64,000 bases of DNA from Oculina patagonica (lineage: Eukaryota). Within the stretch, counting starts at the first letter, position 1; every line of letters begins with the position of its first letter. Below the pieces are notes generated by a model that saw only the letters and a list, made by a program, of their open reading frames with translations, did not search any database and was not told where the DNA came from. Position numbers and translations under genes: made by a program. The stretch covers positions 38,812,001 to 38,876,000 of the forward strand of contig NC_135759.1 of the NCBI RefSeq assembly GCF_052425735.1, read 5' to 3'. Shown piece by piece: positions 53,401 through 56,400 of this stretch.

Positions 53401-56400
53401 GCGGGGGTACTCCGGCTTGTAAATGACAGGGATGATCGAAGGATTTTTTGGGGGTTGAAATTTTCGATTCCGGGATTTTTTTGGGTTGGATAATTTGGTG
53501 ATTGTGAAGAACAGCTCCCGCTAACCGACTGTCGGCCGACAGGTTACCAACACACTACCGACAGGGCACCGACAGCCCACCGACAGGTTACCGACAGCTT
53601 CCCAAAACAGACATTTTACTGTAAAACTGAGCAGTAAACACAGAAGTAAGCCCGACGCAGAAAGCGATTAAAACAGATAGGACTTACAAACATTGTATTT
53701 CATTGTACTACGGTACTTACTACAAAACAAATCGACTCCTCGCCAAGATTTTCTTTTATACAAACTTCAATCTTTTATAAATCTATCACCTACGTAGCTT
53801 TAAGTGCATAAGGCAAGCAATGAAATCACGTTCGAAGATGATTTTATCCAAAACTCAGGCCAAAACAGTGCAAAAACCTCTCCACACACGCACTCGCTGA
53901 AGTCGCCCTAGAATCCTTTGCGACCCCTTCATGGTACGTGTATGTCATGTAAGAGTAAATAATGTTTACCTTTTAACTTTTTTCTCTGTTTGCATTGCAG
54001 GTTGCAGCGTAAATAGTTTCATTTCTCTTCAGAATTTATATGTAAAAAAGGAAATGTTACACGGACGCCTATTGAATTACGTTTTTCTAATTTCTATACG
54101 CAATACAGTGTAATTTGATAATTGATTTAGCGCATGCTGTGATAATTGATTTAGACGCGTGCCACCCTTATTCCCGTTAACAACAAACATATCACACACG
54201 TTGGTCAAGACTTTCATTTATTTGGTGGCTCCTAAAGGAGCCGTTTTTTTTTCATCAAACTAAGTGAACTTAGTTTGGAGGGTAGAACTCAGCAATGCCA
54301 GCTAACACGTTGTCGAAAGGATCGCCTGAGAAACATTTTCGCCAGTTGAACTCATCCAGGTATCCAGGAATTCTCTCTCTCTGAGTGCCGTTCATCGCCT
54401 TCAGTTTCCTTTTAATCTGACTCCATACTCCTTCAATCGTGTTCGAGTGGGCTCCAGTGTAAGGGTCAACAAAGTTCTCAGAATGGTTAACCATGAGGTG
54501 GACGTAGCCGATACTGTTCAGGTTGAAGTATGGTGAAAACTTGTCAGAAATTATCAGCGTTCCAGGCTCGACGAATTGCTGTACCAGTCCAGTTACCAGA
54601 GTTTCTCTTGTTCTGTTGGGTACTCGGAACGCAAGAGCTCTGCCAGTGCCTCTTTCAACCATGCCGAAGACCCAGGTGCCTCTACCGATTCGCCCGCGGT
54701 TGTACTTGCGTTTGTGGCCAAACATGGATTCGTCGATCTCTACAGTCTTTCCACGGCCGCCCAGTTTAATGTTTCCTTGTAGAATTTTCTCGGTGCAGAT
54801 GTCTCTGAGACTTTCAAGTACCTTGACCACCGTACGGAGTGACAATCCGGTTAGCAGGGAAACTTTTTTGTTGGATTCGTCGATCGACCACAGCCAGATG
54901 ATGTACAGCCAGCGATGCAGAGGAATCTTGGAATCTTGGAAAAAAGAACCAGCGCGAATTGATCTTCGTTTTCTGCATTGGTTTACTGGGCATTCCCAGT
55001 GATATCCGTCATCAGAATTATCACATCGTAGAACCATATCGTTTCCACAAGAGCACCTACGCCTAGCCGCCAGTAAGCCACGATCGACAAGGAACGTGAG
55101 CACGGCGTGGCAACTATGGATCAAGGTAAGTATCTCGAAGTGGTTCATGATGAAATGAGTTTATTCACTCTTTCAACAACCTTTATAAAACCTCTGATCG
55201 GATCGAAATTAACCAATGAGAAGTAACTTATTGTAATGGAAAGTATTCATATGCAAAATAGACACAAGTAATCAAACTCGACCAATAACATGCGTTGTTA
55301 ATAAACCAATCAACAAATTGTTATTGTTTATTTGATCCATTTAACAGAGTATAAAAAACCTTGAGTTTAAACGGTCTCTATCATTACGACTCGCAATGTC
55401 TCAGAGAACTCGAAAGTGTACTGTGTGCGGCGGCGCCCACGCCATGTTACAGTGTGAAAATAAGTGTGGTGTTTGTAACGGCGACAACCGTCAGTGTTCG
55501 TGTACGGTGCGCCCAACCCAGAAAAGAAAGAAGACAGCGAAGTCTGCGTCATCCAACCCTCAACGCTCGTATGACGAACTGCAAAAGAAGTACGAGGCCC
55601 TGCTGAAAGACCATGACAGGGTCGGGCTGGCATTCCAGAACCAGAAAGAGCAGAACCAGGAACTGGCACAAGAGCTTCAGGAGAGGGAGAGTGAGGCGGA
55701 GGAGCTAGCGAACATCATAAGAACGAAAGACGAGGTCGTCAAAAACCTCGAGCGGCGCCTCGTCAACGCCAAGAAAGTCATCCACGAACTACGAGCGGAG
55801 GTCGAACAGCTGAAACAGAACGACCAGCCAGAGAGAGAAGAGCCGCCCACCGAACAGCAGCAGCAGCACCAGCAAAGAAATGGCAGTCGTGTCAGTACCC
55901 ATAGCTTGGCCAGCATCCACGAGCGCCATGACCAGGTCATGAACGTCATGATGGAAAACCGATGCAGTATGGCGTGCGCCTTTCGACTGGCCAGCTGCCC
56001 CAGGAGCACTGTCAGAGACTTTGTTGCAATCGCCGAACTTAAGAAGGTCGACGCCAGAGAGTTAGACCTTGTCCTGCGTGACCAGCAAGTGGCTTCCGTG
56101 AAACAACTTGAGACACTGTGCAGAAGACGGCTTCGCAGGTTCATTCCAGTGATGGAAAACATGCGAAGAGAGGGGAAACTACTGCCGCTGAAATTTGATC
56201 AGCGCTTCTACGAGTGAAGTTTGACTCCACTTCGTCAAAAACGGCTCCTTTAGGAGCCACCAAGTCTATAAAAGTAAATGACCAACAATAAAGTTAATTT
56301 ATGATAACAAACATTAATACACTACGTGAAACATAAGAAAAGATACTTGCGATACGTCACATGAAACGAAAATTGTATAAAAATCCGAGGGGGAATGAGA

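Follow-up and report, generated by a model that had tools for sequence, protein, structure and literature searches.

The DNA analysed here (64,000 nucleotides from Oculina patagonica, contig NC_135759.1, positions 38,812,001 to 38,876,000; called the window below and numbered from its first letter) contains a 3.8-kb element at positions 53397-57189, which holds two open reading frames (ORFs) and the spacer between them. An exact 8-bp duplication, CACACAAT, flanks the element at both ends. The element is a DNA transposon of the Merlin/IS1595 type located within a GH31 glucosidase gene, in one of its introns; this placement follows from its position between two exon-like GH31 alpha-glucosidase ORFs (52675-52995 and 58251-58580). 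The two ORFs of the element, both intronless, diverge from the spacer, and it is the promoter layout of this spacer, which resembles that between the histone H2A and H2B genes of corals, that is described in the following. The coordinates of the features are collected in Table 1.

One of the ORFs encodes the transposase, which is under purifying selection: the ratio of nonsynonymous to synonymous divergence (dN/dS) against its relatives was 0.07-0.23. The second, ORF2, encodes a partner protein, and no Pfam family above threshold was found for the protein of the window copy. Its homologue in one related element (L004:1861-2358, minus strand) matches the Pfam family CCDC106 with 33.1 bits, the cut-off being 30.2. 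The partner ORF is retained in the related elements L001, L004 and L005, down to a transposase identity of 53%. In the window copy both ORFs are intact, the inverted repeats are 95% matched and the target duplication is perfect; the element looks active.

A preliminary description of this DNA, made from the letters alone, had reported that on both strands of the spacer a GATCC box lies 11-12 nt before a TATA box with TCATT downstream, and that three CCAAT boxes and an octamer with one mismatch stand between these modules. All of these motifs were found again at the same places. The promoter had also been called mirror-symmetric, which holds for the outward-facing core modules. The mirrored parts are, however, the GATCC-TATA-cap modules alone: the three CCAAT boxes and the octamer all face one way, and no inverted-repeat homology was found between the two promoter halves.

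Table 1. Features of the Merlin/IS1595-type element and of its bidirectional spacer (window coordinates)
Feature	Position	Strand	Remarks
Left target-site duplication CACACAAT	53389..53396		identical 8 bases at 57190-57197
Left terminal inverted repeat	53397..53440	+	38-nt core 95% complementary to 57138-57175; reaches CCCAG tip beside duplication
Hairpin and downstream element after transposase ORF	54206..54247	-	Rfam RF00032 (Histone3), 33.4 bits, E 5.5e-7
Transposase ORF, 292 amino acids	54270..55148	-	Pfam DDE_Tnp_IS1595, 1.5e-27, profile positions 5-151 of 153
Bidirectional spacer, 247 bp	55149..55395		between transposase ORF and ORF2
TCATT initiator-type motif, transposase side	55154..55158	-	A at 55156, 31 nt past first T of TATA and 8 nt ahead of ATG (55148)
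TATA box TATAAAGG, transposase side	55180..55187	-	also in L001 and L004
GATCC, transposase side	55204-55200	-	12-nt gap to TATA
ATTGG-N8-GATCC composite, H2A-type proximal module	55200..55217	-	sole match in window
CCAAT box 1	55213	+	same orientation as boxes 2 and 3
Octamer-like ATGCAAAA	55251..55258	+	contains TTTTGCAT, one mismatch from octamer (TTTGCAT)
CCAAT box 2	55282..55286	+	motif present
CCAAT box 3	55306..55310	+	motif present
GATCC box, ORF2 side (TTGATCC, GGATCAA on other strand)	55334..55338	+	11-nt gap to TATA
TATA box TATAAAAA, ORF2 side	55350..55357	+	motif present
TCATT initiator-type motif, ORF2 side	55381..55385	+	A at 55383, 13 nt before ATG at 55396
ORF2, 273 amino acids	55396..56217	+	Cys-rich N-terminus, then coiled coil
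Hairpin and downstream element after ORF2	56238..56282	+	Rfam RF00032 (Histone3), 35.7 bits
Right terminal inverted repeat	57138..57189	-	pairs with left repeat core
Right target-site duplication CACACAAT	57190..57197		matches left copy

The motif arrangement of the spacer is not due to chance. When the spacer was shuffled with its dinucleotides preserved, GATCC-N5-15-TATA appeared on at least one strand in 142 of 20,000 shuffles and on both strands in none of the 20,000, while at least three CCAAT boxes in one orientation were obtained in 78 of 20,000. Both strands of the 64-kb window hold four GATCC-N5-15-TATA modules, two of which are those of the spacer. The composite ATTGG-N8-GATCC was counted once in the window (expected 0.06). 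A third full GATCC-TATA-CATT match, at 19869, stands without gene context and looks like chance.

No histone genes were found within the window. Coral histone loci were reached by scanning metagenome contigs for the hairpin type of the element (see below), and then via their proteins to further coral histone clusters. In this way three distinct H2A-H2B spacers were obtained: L114 (with the near-identical L128-L137), L141 from Pocillopora meandrina, and the Montipora-type L142 and L144, whose H2B is exactly the one named by NCBI for Montipora capricornis. They measure 283-345 bp, compared with 247 bp in the element. On the H2A side, all three types show ATTGG, 8 nt, GATCC and a right-facing TATA-like box, ATTGG and GATCC lying 13 nt apart from start to start. 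On the H2B side (again 3/3) a left-facing TATA-like box is found with GGAT(C/T)AAT 11-17 nt away. The upstream ATTGG boxes share one orientation in each of the three types, and a central TTTGCATA is present in L114 and L142 in the same orientation as the octamer of the element. With the transposase taken as the counterpart of H2A and ORF2 as that of H2B, the parts of the element match this order and orientation. The composite is confined to the H2A side of the coral H2A-H2B spacers and occurred once among about 120 unrelated metagenome loci; judged from these sequences, it is the sharpest marker that element and histone spacers share. A fourth coral H2A promoter, L049, reads ATTTCGATCCGC, 8 nt, CATAAAAAGG, and the element is close to it with ATTTCGATCCGATC, 5 nt, TTTTATAAAGG.

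The layout was absent from the H3-H4 spacers of the same coral loci. The histone-promoter reading of the preliminary description is thus borne out in parts, order and orientation by the H2A-H2B spacers of three coral types; it had proposed an alignment with H2A-H2B and H3-H4 spacers, with a lack of the motifs counting against it, and in these other corals the motifs were present between H2A and H2B. The symmetry that it had described is the part that needs correction, being only partial: the halves of the promoter differ, the transposase half being H2A-like and the ORF2 half H2B-like. Since the ORFs encode a DDE_Tnp_IS1595 transposase and a coiled-coil protein, what lies in the window is a histone-type promoter plan and not a histone locus.

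Core-to-core global alignment of the element cores with L114 gave modest z values, better than shuffles only with the transposase in the H2A position (1.5-3.4, against -1.7 to 0.6 in the other orientation). The distance between the two GATCC boxes was 106-189 nt in the elements and 109-152 nt in the corals. A near-equal GATCC-GATCC spacing (134 nt in the element, 135 nt in L114) was considered as a shared feature and rejected, the L114 box at -227 not being H2B-proximal. Two loci from human-gut metagenome assemblies that came from the pattern scan (L090 and L119) look bacterial; they were touched by bulk motif scans only and were otherwise unused.

In coral H1 and H4 promoters the TATA box is immediately preceded by GGTCCG(C) (L114:563-862; L074 upstream of H1; L049:1665-2052, H4 side). 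The difference from the GATCCG of H2A is a single base, and a G(A/G)TCCG box may therefore be general to coral histone promoters. In sea urchins, which belong to another phylum, the order in histone promoters is GATCC, about 10 nt, TATA, about 25 nt and a CATT-type cap motif; the early histone promoters reportedly contain GATCC, TATAAATA and a PyCATTCPu cap box.

Relatives of the transposase are numerous in stony corals, the named matches coming from Stylophora pistillata (85%), Oculina patagonica (77%) and Montipora and Pocillopora (45-49%). The DNA of seven relatives was compared, L001-L007, at transposase identities of 92, 85, 77, 70, 53 and 43% (L001 at 92%, L005 at 53%, L006 and L007 at 43%). 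The preliminary description had held that its reading would suffer if the motifs were not conserved in related elements; they are kept in L001-L004. In the window copy and these four elements, the transposase ATG is preceded by a common block of ATTGG, 8 nt, GATCCGAYC, 5-6 nt and TATAAAGG or a degenerate form of it, at -69, -56 and -39. The composite ATTGG-N8-GATCC lies on the side of the transposase (5/5 element loci), with a start-to-start distance of 13 nt in each. On the ORF2 side, GGATCAA is invariant in all five elements. The octamer block is kept in the same five, and is perfect, ATTTGCAT, in L004. A further block, CTCATTTCATC, directly ahead of the transposase ATG, is kept in L001-L003.

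Across the five elements (70-100% transposase identity), 33 of the 59 motif positions listed earlier are invariant, against 39 of 188 elsewhere in the spacer (Fisher p 5.6e-7). The synonymous divergence (dS) of the transposase against L002-L004 was 0.9-3.3; neutral sites are therefore scrambled, yet the motif positions have been kept. The sequence between the conserved blocks is itself scrambled, with insertions and deletions. At 53% identity, L005 keeps the composite, several CCAAT boxes, the partner ORF and both hairpins, with no clear TATA box. In the 43% family (L006 and L007) neither promoter motifs nor hairpins were found. In L001 (734-790) TCATT and the ORF2 ATG are separated by an additional stretch of some 54 nt that includes a tandem TTTGGATTTGCGAA duplication, so that the ORF2 leader of that element is longer.

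Both genes of the element also carry histone-type 3' ends. A hairpin with a downstream element follows each ORF at a distance of 20-22 nt from the stop; with the Rfam RF00032 cut-off at 34 bits, the hairpin of ORF2 scores above it and that of the transposase just below, and both lie within the range of real coral histone hairpins (30.4-37.7 bits). Each consists of a 6-bp stem, a 4-nt loop and an ACCA flank, the stem GGCTCC/GGAGCC being that of the coral histone genes that were fetched, and the AAAG..TGACCAAC downstream resembles the corresponding element of those genes. The two 3' ends of the element are 90% alike over 39 nt, and the hairpins are retained in L001-L005.

The same coral-type hairpin and downstream element were observed after other ORFs that are not histone genes, on contigs from cnidarian-type metagenomes. 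Four are of the Tc1/mariner type (DDE_3 with HTH_Tnp_Tc3_2), all on the minus strand (L016:925-1938, L029:2496-3527, L121:317-1504 and L099:849-1379). A pogo-type (DDE_1) ORF, L053:2629-3054, and a FLYWCH ORF, L094:643-1176, both also minus, end in the same way. Four of these loci (L016, L029, L053 and L094) were scanned with the Rfam Histone3 model and scored 33.3-37.1 bits. Upstream of the L094 ORF the order is CCAAT, GATCC, 9 nt, TATAAAAGG, and L029 carries an ATTGG-N8-GATCT module very like the composite of the element. Ends of the histone type may be frequent among the DNA transposons of corals.

Taken together with a coral H2A-H2B pair, the element shows the same intronless back-to-back genes, an outward TATA box with a GATCC box for each, a one-sided ATTGG-N8-GATCC, CCAAT boxes and octamer pointing one way, 3' untranslated regions (UTRs) of about 20 nt, the GGCTCC/GGAGCC hairpin and the AAAG..TGACCAAC downstream element. 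It differs in its genes, which are those of a transposase and a coiled-coil partner, and in being a mobile unit inside inverted repeats. Its GATCC lies nearer to the TATA box than in most of the corals, its leaders are far shorter and it has one CCAAT box more. The spacer is probably an H2A/H2B-type expression shell, that is, an RNA polymerase II promoter that would time transposase synthesis to S phase.

From this architecture we infer factor binding, start sites, S-phase restriction and a selective benefit, as follows. The transposase would occupy the H2A position, behind ATTGG, 8 nt, GATCCG, TATAAAGG and an initiator, and ORF2 the H2B position, behind GGATCAA, TATAAAAA and an initiator. The spacer would be bound by the factors of histone genes, presumably NF-Y at the CCAAT boxes, a POU/Oct factor at the octamer, a GATCC-box factor and TBP. 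Transcription by RNA polymerase II would begin at the A of TCATT, some 30 nt past each TATA box, which predicts starts at about 55156 (minus) and about 55383 (plus). The SLBP/U7 machinery would then cleave the two messages, which are short and intronless, behind their histone-type hairpins. Canonical histone expression is restricted to S phase by promoter and hairpin 3'-end controls alike; given the shared histone-type promoter and SLBP/U7 ends, transposase and partner would thus be made together, mainly in S phase. With that timing, repair from the sister chromatid, or a move from DNA already replicated to DNA still unreplicated, might raise the copy number of the element. For the cnidarian Hydractinia, expression of genes that have a hairpin and downstream element is confined to S-phase cells positive for EdU (5-ethynyl-2'-deoxyuridine) (PMC5011920), and cut-and-paste elements are known to profit from S-phase timing (PMC4270019, PMC10288884).

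A number of observations weigh against this interpretation. The histone spacers used for comparison belong to other corals and not to the genome of the window. TCATT is a generic initiator-type motif that is not specific to histone genes, and the Pocillopora spacer (L141) contains no octamer. Of the four coral H2A promoters, three have GATCC at 21-24 nt from the TATA-like box, compared with 9-12 nt in the element; L049 alone is a close match. Semi-global alignment of the spacer to that of L114 was no better than with shuffles, and the nucleotide likeness to histone spacers is weak overall and limited to the motif blocks; the claim made here is therefore one of shared architecture and not of alignable homology. 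With starts at TCATT, the predicted 5' leaders would be 8 nt for the transposase and 13 nt for ORF2, much shorter than those of histone genes and awkward for translation; such short leaders usually result in leaky scanning. Finally, a poly(A) RNA run gave 0 reads in either ORF, although poly(A) selection would miss messages ending in a hairpin. The reads of that run fell in the terminal regions only, apart from 7 from another locus sharing the hairpin, and a small-RNA run gave no reads at all.

As to the origin of the arrangement, a single capture of the control regions of an H2A-H2B unit is the somewhat more likely course. It is the simplest explanation because it would account at once for the divergent pair, the side-specific boxes, their order and orientation, the 20-nt 3' UTRs and the hairpin with downstream element on both genes. 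A histone-like shell could also have been assembled convergently, motif by motif, because expression in S phase was selected for, with no capture of an H2A-H2B unit. This is a less probable but credible origin: motif blocks are all that the element and the histone spacers have in common, the use of the same hairpin by unrelated Tc1/mariner DDE_3, pogo-type DDE_1 and FLYWCH ORFs suggests that it was acquired repeatedly, and the likeness of the two 3' ends of the element fits a duplication within it. Against piecemeal convergence stands the match of the whole package to a histone pair, which one capture explains more simply.

The spacer might otherwise be a generic compact TATA/CCAAT bidirectional promoter that resembles histone promoters superficially and does not tie expression to the cell cycle. 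TATA, CCAAT and a TCA initiator are indeed common promoter parts, and both the weak overall alignment with histone spacers and a GATCC-to-TATA spacing unlike that of most coral H2A promoters would agree with it. Such a promoter does not account, however, for the composite ATTGG-N8-GATCC, which has a fixed spacing, is specific to the coral H2A side and is so rare in the window and in unrelated loci, nor for two flavours of GATCC box on corresponding sides, nor for histone-type 3' hairpins on both genes, and this explanation is considered unlikely. Most unlikely of all is a relic, in which control regions of a histone pair acquired by an ancestor no longer work and the element is silent or driven by GH31 read-through: the lack of ORF reads in the poly(A) and small-RNA runs, the intronic position and the very short predicted leaders would fit, but the motif blocks have survived although synonymous divergence is saturated and the intervening sequence was scrambled, the transposase is under purifying selection, and ORFs, inverted repeats and target duplication are in the good state described above.

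The Merlin/IS1595 superfamily is characterized by a target duplication of 8 or 9 bp and a conserved terminal 5'-GG (PMC8101967). The element agrees with the transposons described there in its DDE_Tnp_IS1595 transposase, its terminal inverted repeats, its 8-bp target duplication and its presence in Cnidaria. When the duplication is placed directly at the ends, its tips read CCCAG with a run of G from base 7 and thus lack the terminal 5'-GG, a minor departure. The second conserved ORF, the histone-type promoter and the histone-type 3' ends are further points in which the element differs from these transposons. The inverted repeats of the window copy had no match in L001-L005 at up to 6 mismatches. 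An 11-nt repeat (ACCGACAG plus 3 nt) forms subterminal arrays in both orientations inside the inverted repeats (53513-53614 and 56599-56856); these repeats are probably binding sites of the transposase. The arrays produce spurious microRNA-like Rfam matches.

Contigs assembled from sequencing runs show that multiple copies of the element exist, which differ very little in their promoters. Contigs of the runs X1 and X3 span the promoter and therefore behave like DNA, not RNA. An internally deleted derivative, in which 53928 is joined to 56384, was observed in the contigs of two runs; 2455 nt are skipped, both ORFs and the promoter are gone, and the depth of the derivative is above that of the full element. 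It is a non-autonomous, MITE-like form, and it outnumbers the autonomous copy. A small separate repeat cluster (57843-58210), possibly another miniature element, is located between the transposon and the GH31 exon that follows; its inverted arms are 33 nt long, and a unit of 17-42 nt recurs in it as several direct copies. Farther along the window, two tRNA genes in facing orientation (62998-63069 on the minus strand, 63114-63185 on the plus strand) are separated by 45 nt, both with 50.5 bits in Rfam.

A Merlin transposon with a probable H2A/H2B-type histone expression shell is a combination of known kinds. A full-text search of open-access papers returned none in which a histone promoter or a histone 3' hairpin is described for a DNA transposon, and in the Merlin survey PMC8101967 the words "histone" and "promoter" are both absent.

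Cut-and-paste transposons increase their copies only by moving during or just after replication. To our knowledge, the replication timing of eukaryotic elements is understood for few of them, and there it acts at the DNA ends, as in Ac/Ds. The element would share with Ac/Ds, Tn10 and Tn7 the link between transposition and DNA replication and the resulting gain of copies by a cut-and-paste element; those elements sense hemimethylated or replicating DNA at their ends or target, whereas coupling in the element of the window would act through transposase expression (PMC4270019, PMC10288884).

More widely, it is tentatively proposed that a guild of cnidarian DNA transposons took over the complete replication-dependent histone expression system, with both its promoter and its SLBP/U7 3' end. 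As tentatively, the members of this guild may be the Merlin family of the window, Tc1/mariner-type and pogo-type elements and the FLYWCH ORF in the metagenome contigs. If such a guild exists, its transposases would be made in S-phase cells only, a coupling of transposition to replication that has not been described before for cut-and-paste elements of eukaryotes, and the elements would perhaps gain entry into the histone locus body. In the element of the window, the timing device would be the most tightly S-phase-locked expression system of the host, copied whole. If this holds, the spacer would provide a natural, compact bidirectional cassette of about 250 bp for S-phase-specific expression in cnidarians. 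Comparison of host and parasite would help to dissect the elements of coral histone promoters, the GATCC box included, and the messages of the transposons would offer a test of SLBP/U7 processing for non-histone genes in vivo.

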